Assembly: GCA_020891255.1 (NCBI GenBank)
Contig: BQFW01000011.1
Coordinates: 496,001-560,000, forward strand
Length of the DNA stretch: 64,000 nt
Direction: 5' to 3'
From: Entomortierella parvispora E1425
Lineage: Eukaryota; Fungi; Mortierellomycota
The notes under the pieces are model-generated. The model made no database searches. It was not told the origin of the DNA and saw nothing but the letters and a program-made list of their open reading frames with translations. Below are positions 1 through 10,109 of this stretch, piece after piece. The translations under genes and the position numbers were made by a program. Each line of letters begins with the position of its first letter. The first letter of the stretch is position 1.

Positions 1-16
1 CACCATAAACATACGA

Positions 17-1045
17 ATGCCAGCTTCAGTTGTCGGAAAATATCTCAGGAACAGAGCGCCTTTGATCGCGGCTATCCTCTTGATCGAGTGCCTTGCTATC
101 GTTTGGTTCAAAGGCCCTTCTTCCTTCTCCATCCCATCACCATCACCATCACCATCATTAGCAACATCCACCAGCTCCATACTGACCAGGAACAAGGCCA
201 TCAACAGGAACGTTCCGTTGGCCCTAGGACTTGAAGATGCGACGACACCTCTTCCCTATCATCGATACACGCAATCGGTCCTCCGGAATCCCGCTCGCAA
301 ACAAACAAAGTCAACTACTATTCGTACAATTCATCACAAACAAGCGCAAGTACCTCAGGCATCAAATGGAATGGAGCAATCGAAACTGTCGCAGAAACGA
401 TCGTTGCTTGAGGCGTCACCTCTATCGCTACGAAGGCAGGGGAAAACACACCGTGGTGGACCTCGCCGACTACAAAAGCAAGAACAAGAACAGAAGCGGC
501 AACCATCCAAGATAGCGGCGGTGGATACTCCTAAGCGTGTCAAGACTGAGCAGGTTCATCGCAAGGGTAGCCAGCGTGGATCAAAGAAATCAAACATGGA
601 CGAAAAGCACAGCGAAATATCAAAATCACAAGAAACGGTCTCGGCAACTTTTGCTTCCCAAAACAGGCAGAAGAAACGACCCTTGACCAAACAAGAGAAA
701 AAATCGTCCCAATTGATCCCAGTGATGGACGAGGAAGGCGAGGCGATCAAGGACCATTTCGTATCGCCCAGAGACATTGACGGGGATGGCACTCCAGACT
801 CTTATGTCTTGCTTCGCCCCGCTATGGGAAAGCAAAAATATATGATGGACGTTGGGCTGTTTGATGAGACACTTATCCACACGTAAGATAATACCACACA
901 GAACCATTAAAAAAAGAGCATCCAAATCCATTTCTCCTTGCGTAGAGACCCAAGTTTAATACATATGCTCCGTCAGTCAGGTAGCGTTGAGTTCTTCGGT
1001 ATCCTGCTTCCCGACCGGAGGTCAAAGGAATATCGTTCTATATAA
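17..1045 (+). CDS. Hypothetical type II membrane-anchored protein, probably join(17..883,946..1045)
   Basis: 289-aa ORF with an N-terminal hydrophobic segment (PLIAAILLIECLAIVWF), a Lys/Gln/Ser-rich stalk and a DIDGDG motif. The GTAAGA donor at 884 and TAG acceptor at 945 give an in-frame second exon (TDPSLIHMLRQ...EYRSI*). Confidence 0.55.
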
Positions 1046-1123: not shown

Positions 1124-2609
1124 TTAGGCATCCTCATTTCCGTCTCCCTGCCACAGTCCATAGCGTTTTCCTGGTGTGGTTTGCCAGAGACGGATAGTAC
1201 CGTCTTCCGAGCCAGTAGCGTATAATTCGCCATCAGGGCTGTAACTGACAGTGTGGACTGGTCCATGGTGACCCTTGTACACCTCAAGCTCACGGCCAGA
1301 CTCAAAGTCGTAGATGCGAACCCAGAGATCAGACGAGCCTCCGGCGACAAAGCGGGTATGGTTAGGATGCAAAGACACCGCAGAGACATCGTACTCGGTC
1401 TTGATGTGCTTTCTTAATGTGTATCTGTTTCAAAGAATCAAAACAATAACCTTTTCAGCATTCCGACATGCTTGGTCCATAGATAGCGACTTGACTGAAC
1501 ATACTGATACTTACGTTTGAGCATCCCAGAAGTAAACGGATTTGCCAGTCGTTGCGGTAATATATTGTCCATCTGCTGATAGCTCCATTGATGCAATAGG
1601 TCCGTCCATCTTGCAGGAGTGCACTTGGTTGAATGTGCGAGGATCCAAGACTCTACAGTAGCGCAATAGCACAGTGGCACAAATCAATTAGTGTCAAAGC
1701 ATAAAGGTACGCGCGCAAGCCCATAGATGTCAAACGCTGCTTGTACCTGATCTCTGTATCTTCGCCAGAGCTGAGGATCATATTCCTTGGCCCATCCCAG
1801 ACTACATTTCTGATAACGGAGGAATGGCCTTCGTTGGTCAAGAGGGCTTGTCCTGCCATGTCCTCCCGGTTCAAATCAAAGATTCTCAGTTTCTTCTCCA
1901 TGCCTCCCGTAACAATACGACTTCCGTCACCAGAAAAGTCACCAGCGCGGACAATATGTTGATGTGGGAAAGAGTGCAAGATATCGCCTGTGTATGTATC
2001 CCAGACCTTACTAAATGATCCAAGACGAGTGACAAAAGGAGCAAACAGTTAGTCTTGTGTCCAACTCAGGGGGATCAAAGGAACCAATGAAAGCATAAAC
2101 TCGGTCGGGAGAGATAGAGTCGACCAAGGTGTGTGCCACAACAAGATCGCATGGTTCCACCCAATATTGTCTCTGAAGGGTAGGAGGGCTTCTCCGGACC
2201 AGCCCAATAGGCATTGTTCAAATCGTCAGAGCAGCATACTTACGCTGTGAAGTCGGCCGACGCAGTGACAGCCTTTGTGACATCAGTGCTCATGCGTGCG
2301 CTCCAGACAGCACCCTTGTGTCCAATGAATGTTCCAATCCAGTCTCCTGTCTGTCCATCTCGAAGCATGGGGTTTCCATCTATTCATCCAATGCCTGTGT
2401 TAGCCACTGGATTCTAGACGCGCGAACTCTCATCGGAAACAACCCAAGAAAAGTAAAGTGGTAAAGGTACCATTTCACTCACCTTTGCATGCGCTAATCA
2501 TGTAGTAGGAACCATCAGACATGACCCTAGAGAACTGAAGGTCGACCACGGGGCGGGTGTGCCCTGAACAGGTCAAGGGGATGGCACGGGGAGTAGAGGC
2601 CATGGCCAT
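1124..2609 (-). CDS. STRAP: Serine-threonine kinase receptor-associated protein (STRAP/UNRIP), WD40 repeat; exons 2609-2483, 2379-2244, 2010-1747, 1652-1515, 1424-1124 (321 aa)
   Basis: Family-typical segments: [79 protein letters not shown]. All introns are GT-AG and the exons sum to 966 nt, in frame. Confidence 0.93.
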
Positions 2610-2868: not shown

Positions 2869-3943
2869 ATGACTACCGCTGCTAGGTACCTAATCCGACA
2901 TTTCACTGCGCATCGCATTTTAGACGTATGATGTTATACGAGTCAAGACAGGAAATTGACCCATGTTTCCAACCATGATCAACTCTCTAGACCAACATTT
3001 GATCCCGCCCGTGGCAAGGGTAGCCAGGCACCCACACGTATCTACAGCGCACGCGATCTCGCTTCTCACACAAAGCTGAAGTTCAGGTATTTCCGCCGTC
3101 TTGTAACTTATTGCCTGTATCGTCTGTACTAGCATATCTTAAGATGAACGCTGACGACCGTTACACTTTTGTTTCTTCAACTTTGCAGACAAAGCGGACA
3201 GACAACTCAGGATGAACTTAATAGACTGGATTTGAAGGCTCAGTTACAAAAAGCTGAGCAGGACCATTACGAGAAGCTCAACAAAACTACAAAGCTGGCT
3301 GCTGGTCTTTCCAACTCATTCAAAGATAACGGAGATGACGATGATGAAGACGGATCAAATCACTACCAAGGCGCGCCTTCATCCACGCAAGCAGCCACAG
3401 AAGAAACGCCATTGGAGAGAAAGCGGAGACTTTTGAAGGAGGCTGAGAGACTGGACAAGGACGATAGCGACGACAATGATAGCGATAAGAGTGACGACGA
3501 CAATAGTGATAGCGATGACAGTGACAGGTAACATCGACAGTGAAATTTTTTCTGATTATATCCTCTTATTTTATCTCGCAGTGGTGCTAACAGTGCAATT
3601 CCTCTGAAAATTCAGTGATGACGACGAAGACGACACAGCAGAACTTTTGCGAGAACTAGAAAAGATTAAACGCGAGCGGGCAGAAGAAAAGGAAAGACAG
3701 GAACGGATTCAGCGCGAAGAAGAAGAGAAAGCACGGGAAGCAGAGGTTGCCGCAGGAAACCCGTTATTGCCAATGCCTGAGGCAGGACTTCCTAAGGATT
3801 TTTCTGTCAAGAGGCGTTGGGACGATGATGTGATCTTCAAGAACCAGGCACGAGGCATGGATGACAAACCCAAGAAGCGGTTCATCAACGATACGCTCCG
3901 CTCTGACTTTCATCGCAAGTTCATGTCAAAATATGTGCAATAA
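2869..3943 (+). CDS. CWC15: Pre-mRNA splicing factor Cwc15/Cwf15; exons 2869-2885, 2991-3086, 3189-3527, 3616-3943 (259 aa)
   Basis: N-terminus MTTAARPTFDPARG...RDLASHTKLKFRQ, an acidic middle, and C-terminus KRRWDDDVIFKNQARG...FINDTLRSDFHRKFMSKYV. GT-AG introns keep the frame. Confidence 0.95.
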
Positions 3944-3984
3944 AAGTCAAGTAGCAATTTATTTATGTACATTTGTTGTCTCTG

Positions 3985-4377
3985 TTATTCGATGTCAAAG
4001 GCGACGACGACACCATTCCCTTGTATCCGCTCTGCACCTGCGTCTTGCGAAAGTACTATTCCTGACTTTGTAGCAATTTCTCGAAGTTGCTTCTCCGGGA
4101 TAGACTTGAGGTCGATCCGGCGGGAGTGTATTTTGCCATCTTTTGGTAATCGAAGAGGACCGCGGAAAGCAAGTCCAGGAGTGGCGTGGATTGTCTCCAT
4201 GAGCAGATCGAAGGTCTTGTTGAGCTTTGTTGTGCTCTCGGACTGGACAGTGATAGAAAAGTCTGCTTTCAAGTCCAAGGGGGCAGCCGTCTCCGCTGTT
4301 GCTTCAGTTATCCGAGTTGTAGTCAGATTGGCGGGAGTGTTGGCAGAAGATGAAGCATCTGTGGTTGGTGACTCCAT
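3985..4377 (-). CDS. Divergent ribosomal protein uS10 (Rps20/S10/NusE)-like protein lacking the extended loop
   Basis: 130-aa ORF. FSITVQS..KL / LAFRGPLRLP / KIHSRRIDL / GVVVAF align with the uS10 core motifs (IRITLTS..QL, KGPVRLP, RIHKRYIDL, GVDVEV). The ~20-aa loop between RLP and IH is replaced by KDGK. Confidence 0.7.
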   Translation of the reverse strand: MESPTTDASSSANTPANLTTTRITEATAETAAPLDLKADFSITVQSESTTKLNKTFDLLMETIHATPGLAFRGPLRLPKDGKIHSRRIDLKSIPEKQLREIATKSGIVLSQDAGAERIQGNGVVVAFDIE

Positions 4378-6961
4378 GGCTCTTAATGCTCCTGTCTTCT
4401 AGCTACGAAAGCGGGATGTCTCTGGGTTCTTCAACGACGGCTGTGAATCGAAAGACTGATGTTGCGCATTCTGCAATTCTCAGTTGCTGTCTGTTCGCTG
4501 TGAGCGGGACGTGGGCTTGGGCGATTTCAGTCACATGACATTTTTTTCGTTTCGCCTAACGTTTCGAGTTGGTTTCCAGCTCGGGGATGGGCACACCCTC
4601 ATAACTCTGCGTAAAGATCGTGGGGCCAAGAAGGACTAGATCACATAACCGTCGTGTTCGAGGTCATTAGTTAGAGAATGAGTGCAATGCTCGTTTGGTA
4701 TCACGAGCTCTTTGGCGACATCCATTGTTCGCCGGAAAGGTCAGCAACTCCAGTTTTTAAAAGACATCCGCAATAAGCAAGTATGGAAATACTCCATGCA
4801 TAAGCACAGCAGAGTTGAAAAGAATTGCCAGTGGTTAGTGTCCACAGAGGGCGAGGGCGACAACAAACTCAGCTTGCCATGTTCAAGTCTTCGTCTTTAG
4901 TCAGCTGTTCGGCACTTTCGGTATGCAGTCGCCCAACCAACGACGATACTGCCGCTAGTCAGGTCGGAGAGGACGTTTGAGTCTTGAACATGATACTTCT
5001 GGAGGGACAAGAGGCCAACATGTTGTCTATCGAGATGAAGAGAATGAGTGCAGAATCCTAACAAGTCGCCAAGGTCTTGAAGACGGTTAGCCAAGAGTAA
5101 AAACTGTGCATGATCGGCATGAAGACAAACTATCGCTTTGGTGTGAATATGAACATTCAGCTGAGGTGAATACGGTGGTGTAGCTTAGATCTGCTGCAGA
5201 ACAAACCCTTCCTCATAACCCTGCCTGATCATAAAGGTGTTGGCCAGGGTCAAAATCGACGACGAGAGGGACACAGAGACGGCGAATCAAGAACCGGGTG
5301 GCCGAAGACCCGGTGAAAAACAAGACTTTCATAATGGTCACCAATAGCTCCAAGTAAAAGCTCCTGCAATTTACCCCTGTCGAGAAGAGCAGGAGAGGCA
5401 CCCAACGTCTACGGAGCGCTTTCAAGCAGAGAGGCGGCGACGCGACTGAAAAAAGATTCGGGACTGCCAAATCTCGCGTCTCGTCACTTTTCGAGAAATG
5501 GCGTGCTGTGCCATGCAAAGAAGAGACCCTTGACCCGTTCCTCTGGTGTAACCTGTCGTTCCCCCCTCTCCTTTGCTGGTAATGACAACGATGAGATAGA
5601 AGGCGAAGGATGTGAGAGAAATGCGCATTCTTATCAGTGCCCGCGCTTTTTCAGTCTCACCCCTCCCAGCAAGTAGCGTGCTTCTTGCCTGAAAAGTGGT
5701 CCAGGCACACAGTGCGCAGTGGTTGAGATTGAAGTCTCAAGGCTATAATAGATAGTTAGCTGTTTGAAAGTTGCTCCACTATGAGAAATTGTCCATAACG
5801 GATTTCAACTTCATGACGAGTGAGGGTCCCGATCGCCAACAGTGCGGAGGTGATGTATGGCAGGTATTGTGCGTAACGAGAATGTGGCCTAAACACAGTT
5901 TGGAAGGGAGAAGCGCTCGATTGTCCGACGTAATTCCCCTGTGGTGACCGCAATCAGCAATCGAAGTCACCCCTGCCTGTTGAGCTCAAAGCACACCATG
6001 GTTGATCGGGAAGGCATTCGCCTGCCACCATTGGCTGCGGGCAAGCAAATTGCTCAAGGTCACAGTCTGAACTTCAGCCGCCATCCACGAAGAAGAAACG
6101 AGGAGCTTCCTTTCCCATCCATAATCCTCCTTTGTCTTTTCCAACCCGAGCCATCCATCTCATATCGATCTGCGGGTCTTCACACTGGCCCTTTCTTCCC
6201 CCTGTTTCCTTGTTTTGAGCCTTTGGCCTTCATTCCCGGAATTGCCAAAGAACCAGCAATATCGTGTCATCGCAGGACCCTTTCCATTCACTCTCGCTCC
6301 CACCTTGATTGTGGTCTTGATCTCTTTCTCTGTTTCTTTTTCTTGTTTTTTTCCTTCTTTTTTTACCGTTCGCCCGTTTTCACCTGCCAAACCCTGTTGA
6401 TCTTCTCCCAGAGAAAATACAGGTCAACTTCCTTGCAGTCCCTTTTTATCGCTCTGTTTTGTAATCCTATCCCCTTGGTTGCACAAGGGAAACCAGAAGG
6501 AATACTTCCAGTTTTTTTTTGAAATATGAATCGTGTGCTCTTGACCGAAATAACATCATTGGAAGCCATGCCTTCGCCATTTTCGGCGTTTTCTCTCTAA
6601 TACAAACCACGCTTCTGTGAACGTCCGACATCCTTGTCCATCGCCCCTCCTTTTTTGTTTTTGTTTTATTTTGACTCCTTTCCTTCTCTCTTTCTATTTC
6701 TCACCTACTTTTTTTGACAATTGCTTTGCGCCATATATCCCGTCGTTGGATTCGCCCTGAACTCACTCCTCGATCCAACACTTCTCCTTGCTCGTGCTTT
6801 ATTTTGGCTCTCAAAACTCAAAGATCAGGTCAACTATTTGCTTGTCAGAAACCTTTGACTCGACGTTAAGCAGAATACAGCCTCTGTCTGCAGCAGTTTT
6901 CTAGAACCCACAAGGACGATTTCCGAAACACTTCAGTAGTCCAACAAACTGGTTTCCTTCA

Positions 6962-8564
6962 ATGCAACACCAACAATTTTCGCACGGTCAACAACAGCAG
7001 CAACAACAGCAACAGCAGAGCTCGCAACACCACCATCAACAGCAACATCAAAGACAGGAATCTTCATACCTGTCTGGTGGTCTTGTATCCGACTATCAAA
7101 GAGCGATGCAACAGTTCGATTCACTGCATGGATTCTTAGATAGTGGTAGGAAGTTTTTCCTCTCGGATTTCTGTAAATATTTGATAGACCTCGGACCTGA
7201 AAATTGGCCATTATTCTGCGCAAATAGATCCTAGATCCGCCATGCTTCAGGGGCAACAACAGCAGTCGTCTCATCAGATAACATTCGATCCAAGAGTTCA
7301 GCATCACCAGCAACATCAACAGCCTCACTCAAATTTGCCAGCGATCCAAGGTTATCATCAGCAGCCGGCATCCTCTGCCTACCTGTTATCCTCTTCGACG
7401 TCGGTGTCACATCTGCCGCTGAAAAATCGGAGCCGACATCACAGCGTCAGTACGGCTCATGGCTCCTCTCACTCGGCCCCTCAGCAGCAACAACTCTTAC
7501 CAGGTTATCAACAACAGCAGTATCAGCTCAGCTCTCAGTCCAGCGAATCAATTCAACGGGAAAGACTTCAACAACTCGAGGATGAGCTGGAGGAGTACGC
7601 ACAAGAGCTTGCAGATGAAAAACGGTTATTATTTCTTCAAAAAGATCACCACGCTTCAAATGACAGCCCCATGGATGAATACGATGATGAAGGCGACGGG
7701 GATTATGGAGATGAAGACGAAAATATGAACTACCCGAACGGGAACAGAGGAGGCATTAGGACCGATTCTGGAACACCCGGGACTGGTGGCAACAATACAC
7801 CACGTCACTCTGCCTCACCCTCACCGTCCTCACCGTCCTCACCGTCCATGACTTACACGCCCTCCGACATTGGAGGAAATGCCAGTGGTGAGTCTCTAGG
7901 CTCTCCCATTTCCACTTCGTCTCCGAGTACACCTTACTCCCCTGGAGCTGTCCAGGCCGAAGGAATGTCGGCAGCCGCAAAACAAGAAGCCGAAGATGAC
8001 AAGCGACGCAGGAACACTGCGGCTTCAGCCAGATTCCGACACAAGAAACGATTGAGAGAACAGATCCTGGAAAAAACGGCCCAGGAAATGACAGCCAAAT
8101 CAGACCGTCTGCAGGCACGGGTGCGGGAGTTGGAAATGGAAATCAAGTGGCTCAGGGGCCTTGTTGTCGAAAAAGATTCTAGGGGAACATTGAAAAGAAG
8201 TCTAGGCGTTTCGTTGGGTCTGACGTTGCCGACAGGGCCAACAACTGCCGGAGTTGGCCATGCTGCAACAGGCATCCCCAAAGGACCGGGAGGCACACCG
8301 TCAACTGTGGGGGTCTCTGCAATGTCGAATTTATTGTCGAGTTCATTGCCGGCTTCCTTGGCTTTGCCTTCTTTTGGGTCTCCAACCTCATACCTGAATC
8401 AACCCTCAGCCCTGCCCTTCGGCATGGATATCACCAACAGTGGCAGTAATGGTCCTTTTCCTTCGTCGACCATAGCTCCGAATGCATTGATCCATCAGGG
8501 TAAATCATCAGAGTCGGGACCCGCATCCAAGTCAGCATCGAGGAGAAGTAAAAAGGCACAATAG
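6962..8564 (+). CDS. bZIP transcription factor, Zip1/MetR/CYS-3-like; join(6962..7145,7228..8564), 506 aa
   Basis: Basic region and zipper EDDKRRRNTAASARFRHKKRLREQILEKTAQEMTAKSDRLQARVRELEMEIKWLRGLV match the fungal sulfur-regulator bZIP family. PolyQ N-terminus. An 82-nt GT-AG intron joins the two ORFs in frame. Confidence 0.85.
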
Positions 8565-9368: not shown

Positions 9369-10109
9369 ATGGAACCACCCACAGCAAGAAGAGGAGTGTC
9401 CAAAGGCGAGCGACCTCTTCGTCTTAGATTGGGAGCAACACCTCGAGTGGCGAATCCCGCTCCCCTCGGTCTTTTAGCCTTCGGATTGTCTGCCTTCTCT
9501 ATGAGCCTGTACAATGCTCGAGCTGGAGGGTTAAGCGACAGCGCATCTACAAGTTTTCCAATCGTTACGGCGATGTATTACGGCGGTTTTGGGCAGGTAA
9601 GCAGGCACAGTGTTAACACGACTTTAATCAAGCAGCACTACGTTGAATATGATGGAAAAAAAATGAACAGAGCTCTTTCTGCCTTCCTCTATCTTGCTCA
9701 GATAATTACCATGACTGTTCGAGTTCAAAAACGGCAACATGTTCGGCGCTACAGCTTTCCTGTCTAATAGCCTCTACTGGCTTTCATTTGCGACGCATCA
9801 GATCCCATTTTTCGGATTGACCAACGAGACAGCAGCCTCTGTGACATTTGAATCCGATTAGAGGATTCATTCCGGATTCCTATCTCTCAGTTGGGCTCTT
9901 TTCACTTTCTTGATCTGGTCGTTGACGCTTCGATCTAATTTGGCCACATCGTTGCTGTTCTTTCTTCTCGGCACTGGATTTTTGTTGTAAACAGATCTCG
10001 CTGAGTGAGATTGGTGGGTAGGGTGATCATTGTCCTGACTGGCCTGGTCTCGTGGCACTGTGCCATGGCACAACTCAATCAACAAGGGTGGTCGAAAGCA
10101 GAGTATTAA
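9369..10109 (+). pseudogene. GPR1/FUN34/YaaH (acetate/ammonium transporter) pseudogene
   Basis: Contains the ANPAPLGL motif, YYGGFGQ, intron 9597-9701, then EFKNGNMFGATAF and WALFTFLIWSLTLRSN. It is disrupted by a +1 frameshift near 9714, an in-frame TAG at 9859-9861, a TAA at 9988-9990, and a further frameshift before the last helix (GRVIIVLTGLVSWHCAMAQL). Confidence 0.8.

Follow-up and report, generated by a model that had tools for sequence, protein, structure and literature searches.

A loop-less uS10 (Rps20) paralogue in Mortierellaceae fungi, a candidate non-ribosomal S10-fold adaptor

The locus and its gene neighbourhood

The window analysed here, a 64-kb stretch of the Entomortierella parvispora E1425 genome, carries on its minus strand a short gene resembling that for the small-subunit ribosomal protein uS10 (Rps20). 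The open reading frame (ORF) at 3985-4377 is intact, ATG-initiated and intron-less, comprises 130 codons, and is preceded in frame by a stop codon nine codons 5′ of the ATG. The following features were delimited within it, each given with the evidence used.

3985-4377, minus strand: complete single-exon CDS of a loop-less uS10 paralogue, 130 aa plus stop (ORF list, upstream in-frame stop, orthologues, dN/dS)
4273-4377, minus strand: N-terminal Thr/Ala/Ser-rich extension, residues 1-35 (alignment, pLDDT, dN/dS, composition)
3988-4272, minus strand: conserved S10-fold core, residues 36-130 (AF2 model, Foldseek and VIA-align matches to uS10, profile matches)
4108-4164, minus strand: most strongly conserved block, residues 72-90 (RGPLRLP-KDGK-IHSRRIDL), in which the two central strands carry the S10 signature motifs (invariant columns)
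4132-4143, minus strand: KDGK tight turn replacing the 21-22-residue ribosome-anchoring hairpin of uS10 (sequence read directly, hhalign gap)
4015-4065, minus strand: insertion particular to the family, residues 105-121, which lies between helix 2 and the last strand and contains a short extra strand (DSSP of the model, length comparison)
3988-3999, minus strand: invariant C-terminal FDIE, residues 127-130 (F127, D128, I129 and E130 invariant in 18 sequences)

This ORF is far more than a chance reading frame, with core identities of 64-95% between its product and 15 other Mortierellaceae proteins and a core dN/dS of about 0.05. Its GC and GC3 resemble those of the neighbouring genes, a native-like composition. 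The exact product of 3985-4377 was not found in a collection of 15 billion proteins, and the gene may therefore be unannotated in the E1425 genome. A plus-strand ORF of 145 aa (3965-4402) spans the entire CDS; this is most likely a spurious antisense frame, since selection acts on the minus-strand frame. The 64-kb window yielded no second ORF of the GPxRLP type. Because uS10 is universal, a separate canonical RPS20 is expected in the E1425 genome.

The S10-like gene lies tail-to-tail with a two-exon gene for the spliceosome protein CWC15/Cwf15 (PF04889, E 1.5e-44; 3169-3943, plus strand). Only 41 nt separate the two stop codons, so the 3′ UTRs of the two genes must overlap. In a diverged strain carrying the same species label, whose contig covers 3985-4309, all differences within the CDS are substitutions and the indels fall within the 41-nt spacer. 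The adjacency of CWC15 is limited to the window's own lineage (L001, L007 and L008), and for that reason we dropped it as a functional clue. Other gene pieces nearby include a WD40-repeat exon (1653-1979, minus strand), a 440-aa ORF with a bZIP_2 domain (7242-8564, plus strand) and an exon of a GPR1/FUN34/YaaH-family membrane protein (9369-9767, plus strand).

A different arrangement recurs elsewhere in the family. In seven named Mortierellaceae genomes, among the loci L003, L005, L006, L009, L010, L011, L014 and L004, a divergently transcribed PF01553 acyltransferase gene adjoins the orthologue, and in six of these genomes a protein kinase gene lies about 0.6-2.3 kb downstream of it; in Linnemannia gamsii (L003) the kinase was called and no acyltransferase was. 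These syntenic loci come from Linnemannia, Actinomortierella, Mortierella, Podila, Entomortierella and Haplosporangium. Neither the PF01553 acyltransferase nor the kinase was found in the 64-kb window. The promoter region that the acyltransferase gene and the orthologue share raises the question of co-regulation with lipid metabolism in these oil-producing fungi.

Transcript-like contigs were found for one species, Podila verticillata, in which three 1.1-kb Logan contigs (L015-L017; runs SRR6256863, SRR6256864 and SRR6256866) correspond to L014:4861-6008 and extend beyond the orthologue by about 70-140 nt on its upstream side and about 520-560 nt on its downstream side. The runs are consecutive, the contig ends nearly coincide, and one contig ends in an Illumina adapter. 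Because of the coinciding ends and the adapter junction these contigs look like transcripts, of which they are putative examples from runs of unverified type; the Podila verticillata genome contig also terminates near the orthologue. Contigs from runs bearing the species label of the window were rejected as transcript evidence, being diverged (<90% identical) and, in one case (24.9 kb), genomic.

The S10 fold and the ribosomal features lost and kept

The uS10 signatures that flank the ribosome-binding hairpin, GP-x-[RP]-LP and H-x-R-x-x-D, are both present and are invariant in the 18 sequences compared, where they align with the corresponding motifs of E. coli, Aquifex and Thermotoga. Eleven positions of the conserved block are invariant in these 18 sequences (R72, G73, P74, R76, L77, P78, H84, S85, R86, R87 and D89), and the block aligns to RGPIPLPT and THLRLVDI of E. 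coli S10. Between the signatures the long anchoring β-hairpin of uS10 is absent and a KDGK turn stands in its place. The reverse complement of 4132-4143 reads AAA GAT GGC AAA, and the peptide RGPLRLP-KDGK-IHSRRIDL is uninterrupted at the codon level; therefore no intron can conceal a loop. When the family was aligned by hhalign to E. coli S10 (reference sequence from NC_000913; P 5.8e-4), a 21-residue gap fell exactly opposite E. coli residues 47-67. A preliminary description of this DNA had proposed that motifs of the type ITxxS..L, RGPLRLP and KIHSRRIDL were kept, that the codons ran contiguously with no hidden intron, and that the uS10 loop was reduced to a short turn. All of this is borne out, with RGPLRLP at residues 72-78 and IHSRRIDL at residues 83-90, and the hhalign gap at the ribosome-binding loop occupied by KDGK.

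Two further departures from uS10 that it had pointed to, a T/A-rich N-terminal extension and an insertion of about 12 aa near the C-terminus, were likewise recovered. Residues 1-35 contain 9 Thr, 7 Ala and 4 Ser and differ in length and sequence between species in the alignment, and in the full-length model this head is predicted to be disordered, with pLDDT below 50 at residues 1-3, 11-17 and 19-32. At the other end, 47 residues run from the conserved His to the C-terminus, as compared with 34 in E. coli S10. The additional residues appear in the AF2 model, by DSSP, as coil at core residues 74-84 followed by a short extra strand at 85-87.

An AlphaFold2 model of the core, built on a 16-sequence core alignment, reached a pLDDT of 93 and a pTM of 0.84. 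Its topology, strand-helix-strand-strand-helix-(short strand)-strand, is that of the globular S10 fold, and the structural S10 signal from this predicted model is strong. In a Foldseek search against the PDB, the comparison with uS10 that had been suggested at the outset, the top match was an engineered delta-loop NusE (3d3c_J, E 2.9e-5), and 28 of the best 30 matches were S10 proteins. Similarly, a shape search of the ESM Atlas returned eukaryotic uS10 at a TM score of 0.71 and an rmsd of 1.8 Å. The C-terminal domain of PriA also appeared among the structural matches (TM 0.68, rmsd 2.2 Å in the ESM Atlas), with a Z rank below uS10. The top AFDB match, A0A2I1CKG6, and also Q8IK02 are presumably models of ordinary RPS20. 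A feature search of the ESM Atlas gave nothing beyond unnamed and phage clusters, with scores of at most 0.81. Structure-based identity was mostly 25-32% to eukaryotic cytosolic uS10, 20-22% to bacterial S10 and 10% to human mitochondrial uS10m. We conclude that the window protein is a diverged uS10 homologue, nearest the eukaryotic cytosolic type; that the highest identity is to cytosolic uS10 fits its original description as an Rps20 paralogue.

At the level of sequence profiles the S10 signal of the loop-less family is weak but consistent. The window protein alone gave no PF00338 match at E values up to 10 and matched nothing in Pfam, and it scored a sub-threshold 12.5-13.8 bits against a cut-off of 96 on TIGR01046 (uS10_euk_arch, NCBIfam). 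When family members were scanned separately, TIGR01046 was matched by 16 of 16 (best E 0.0024), PF00338 by 12 of 16 (best 0.0033) and the bacterial S10 model by 4 of 16, in all cases below the curated cut-offs; no S10 model reaches its curated cut-off in any of the 16 members scanned. Thus the profile search for Ribosomal_S10 proposed earlier gave consistent but sub-threshold uS10 matches, and among curated families the loop-less family has no match above threshold. Weak matches to bPH_1, GroES, CENP-S and Acyltransf_C were inconsistent between members and were set aside as noise. Against PDB sequences, the sole matches of the single window protein were the engineered delta-loop NusE entries 3D3C and 2KVQ. 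With a profile of the family core, S10 proteins accounted for 10 of the 14 PDB matches listed, and the five best matches (E 0.006-0.02) were without exception engineered delta-loop proteins, of E. coli, Aquifex or Thermotoga origin. Such bacterial constructs lead the sequence scores because they are the ones that lack the loop.

Several properties that tie uS10 to the ribosome have gone. The core has a pI of 5.4-8.3, with K+R about equal to D+E, and lacks the strongly basic character of a ribosomal S10; E. coli S10 has a pI of 9.7, or 10.4 without its loop. In yeast, Rps20 residues D113 and E115 of the last strand contact the N-domain of Rps3 and are required for 40S maturation (PMC6588571). 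Opposite yeast positions 113 and 115 the family has Val (core residue 93) and Ala, Ser or Thr (core residue 95), and the acidic pair is absent, as judged from a correspondence derived from the ends of the VIA ranges (model 2..99 to yeast 15..119, and model 6..98 to yeast 19..118). Other features are kept and invariant, namely the basic base of the central hairpin (the R72-D89 block) and the C-terminal FDIE. The retained S10 signature residues could mean that rRNA binding is retained as well. Since the family falls below the uS10 thresholds and has neither the loop that anchors uS10 nor its basic charge nor its contact with Rps3, we regard it as a diverged paralogue rather than as part of the ribosomal family proper.

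Distribution and selection in the Mortierellaceae

To define the extent of the family, word-seeded searches covering 5.8 billion proteins were carried out and returned 17 and later 33 relatives. There are at least 33 orthologues in at least 10 genera, nearly all annotated as hypothetical proteins, and every one with a source name belongs to the Mortierellaceae. The genera are Linnemannia, Mortierella, Podila, Entomortierella, Haplosporangium, Gamsiella, Dissophora, Lobosporangium and Modicella, together with Actinomortierella, which was added when 1.84 billion cluster representatives were searched exhaustively with a profile. This search found five clusters; those with a source name are all from Mortierellaceae, and P0018, the fifth, is almost a copy of a Linnemannia protein. 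No loop-less S10 member from outside the Mortierellaceae was found among the 1.84 billion cluster representatives. The preliminary description had suggested a search for orthologues across Mucoromycota, and its expectation is refined here: conserved orthologues do exist, but in the Mortierellaceae alone and not in Mucoromycota generally.

Within the family the protein is well preserved. Across the 95-residue core, the window protein is 64-95% identical to the 15 other Mortierellaceae proteins, with 44 invariant columns; across the orthologues from at least 10 genera, 30 columns are invariant. The core is under strong purifying selection: dN/dS was 0.05 between the window gene and its closest metagenomic relative (dS 0.54) and 0.04 for a Linnemannia-like pair (dS 0.71). 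For the N-terminal head the ratio is about 0.5, as compared with about 0.05 for the core. The dN/dS test of orthologues suggested with the original description therefore indicates purifying selection and not a decaying copy.

Public gene models of the orthologues vary in their boundaries. Several (among P0016, P0017, P0035, P0036 and P0038) are shortened to 71 aa and start at the internal Met of helix 1, and one (P0018) is extended 5′ to 236 aa. The Actinomortierella orthologues P0020 (L004:5001-5861) and P0021 are lengthened by some 85-150 low-complexity residues inserted between helix 1 and the second strand, away from the position of the S10 loop. The P0020 gene model has an intron, and part of this insertion could be an annotation artefact.

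Possible roles of a loop-less S10 core

We regard the identity of the window protein as a loop-less S10-fold paralogue as firm, and infer its mechanism from the features described above. In the reading that we favour, with a probability of roughly 60%, the gene encodes a functional, Mortierellaceae-specific paralogue of cytosolic uS10 (Rps20) that has lost its hairpin and now acts as a free, non-ribosomal S10-fold adaptor. The protein retains the globular S10 core and has lost the long β-hairpin with which uS10 reaches into the small-subunit head, and its sequence suggests that it is not a stable constituent of the 40S subunit. In line with the preliminary description, we read it as extra-ribosomal because the hairpin is missing, the basic charge is lost and the Rps3-contact residues are lost. 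The free core would then bind, at a place other than the uS10 site, a putative partner that is either RNA or protein, in principle analogous to the way in which bacteria employ the S10 core as NusE. The putative binding surface is the invariant basic hairpin base (R72, R76, K79, K82, H84, R86 and R87) together with the invariant FDIE, chosen as the most constrained surface of the protein, and the disordered Thr/Ala/Ser-rich head is a fast-evolving appendage.

A narrower proposal is that the protein is a eukaryotic counterpart of NusE, a dedicated extra-ribosomal adaptor for a KOW-domain or NusB-like partner belonging either to the host (e.g. Spt5) or to an endosymbiont. Mortierellaceae commonly carry bacterial endosymbionts. 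We consider this specific version distinctly unlikely; were it true, a moonlighting function of uS10 would have been split off into its own gene. To our knowledge, no cytosolic or nuclear NusB exists in fungi. In architecture the fungal protein is near-identical to the engineered NusE/S10 delta-loop proteins (3D3B, 3D3C, 2KVQ, 3R2C and 2MEW): the 22-residue loop of E. coli was replaced in the construct by one Ser, and the fungal protein has a natural four-residue turn at the same point. The constructs, however, are artificial and bacterial and act with NusB, NusG and BoxA, whereas the fungal protein is natural and nearest eukaryotic uS10. Architecture alone is common to NusE and the fungal family.

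The main rival to the free-adaptor reading places the protein at the ribosome, as a biogenesis or ribosome-associated factor. Its core would dock for a time at the uS10 site of the (pre-)40S head or close by, or would engage a partner of uS10, and so would act as a competitor or placeholder. Yeast Rps20 lacking the 11-residue tip of its loop is completely assembled into pre-40S particles and stalls the release of Rio2 and Ltv1 (PMC6588571); therefore loop loss by itself is no proof of absence from (pre-)ribosomes, and a loop-less core can in principle occupy the site. The family is, moreover, a uS10 paralogue in which the most conserved S10 residues are kept around the base of the hairpin, and placeholder paralogues are an established class. 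This class includes Mrt4/uL10, Rlp24/eL24, Rlp7/uL30 and Imp3/uS4, diverged paralogues of ribosomal proteins in which some feature required for staying permanently in the ribosome has been lost. These are essential assembly factors found throughout eukaryotes, and their binding to pre-ribosomes has been demonstrated. The loop-less family resembles them as a ribosomal-protein paralogue but is lineage-specific and limited to one fungal family. Its entire hairpin is gone and not merely the 11-residue tip, its net positive charge has been lost, Val and Ala occupy the positions matching the Rps3-contact residues D113 and E115, and the 800 nt upstream do not contain ATCAGG, a candidate promoter word of ribosomal-protein genes. 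On balance we think a placeholder or competitor role unlikely, though well worth entertaining. Stable residence of the protein as a variant uS10 in a specialised subset of 40S subunits would agree with the S10 fold and the signature motifs. A near-neutral protein with no anchoring hairpin, lost Rps3 contacts and just 25-32% identity to an otherwise highly conserved family makes a poor candidate for such a subunit, and we hold this to be highly improbable.

The remaining alternatives concern origin and not function. The protein might descend from something other than fungal RPS20, such as a convergent ferredoxin-like domain, a derivative of the PriA C-terminus or a transferred bacterial or mitochondrial S10. 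PriA_C (PF18074) is indeed a natural loop-less S10-like fold found among the structural matches, the E-values linking the family to S10 by sequence are just 0.002-0.02, and the best sequence matches are bacterial constructs. Against these points, structure-based identity is highest to eukaryotic cytosolic uS10 (25-32%, vs 20-22% for bacterial and 10% for mitochondrial S10), TIGR01046 was matched by all 16 members and the bacterial model by four, PriA_C was matched by no member at E values up to 10, and GC and GC3 are like those of the neighbouring genes. PriA_C is also part of a bacterial helicase, whereas the loop-less protein is encoded by a stand-alone eukaryotic gene with no sequence link to it. 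An origin of this kind is thus improbable. That the gene is a decaying RPS20 retrocopy or pseudogene with an ORF kept by chance might be suggested by its short, intron-less form, by the lack of its exact product in the protein collection and by the failure of the same-label contigs to yield transcript evidence; this reading is effectively refuted by a dN/dS of 0.04-0.05 at a dS of 0.5-0.7, by intact orthologues in at least 10 genera and by the synteny kept across named Mortierellaceae genomes.

With respect to eukaryotic uS10 (PF00338, TIGR01046), then, the family has a KDGK turn for a hairpin of 21-25 residues, about 12 extra residues ahead of the last strand, a disordered head, a pI of 5.4-8.3 as opposed to about 10, and Val/Ala at the Rps3-contact positions; it lies below every curated cut-off and occurs in Mortierellaceae only. 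Its nearest architectural analogue is the artificial NusE delta-loop, and its nearest analogue in evolutionary logic is the ribosomal-like placeholder. A eukaryotic S10 paralogue without the loop was not described in any paper that our literature searches returned.

uS10 is among the few ribosomal proteins with a well-defined second role, that of NusE in bacteria, and it was reportedly by deleting the ribosome-binding loop that these two roles were told apart. In a eukaryote, nearly the same deletion has arisen by evolution, and its product has been kept under strong selection across the Mortierellaceae. Should the protein bind (pre-)40S particles after all, it would represent a regulator, specific to this lineage, of the checkpoint in 40S maturation that depends on Rps20. 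Genetic tools exist for Mortierella alpina and Linnemannia elongata. The loop-less family offers a natural handle on what the S10 core is capable of off the ribosome in eukaryotes, and would lengthen by one lineage-specific case the list, so far short, of paralogues of ribosomal proteins that have taken on new functions.
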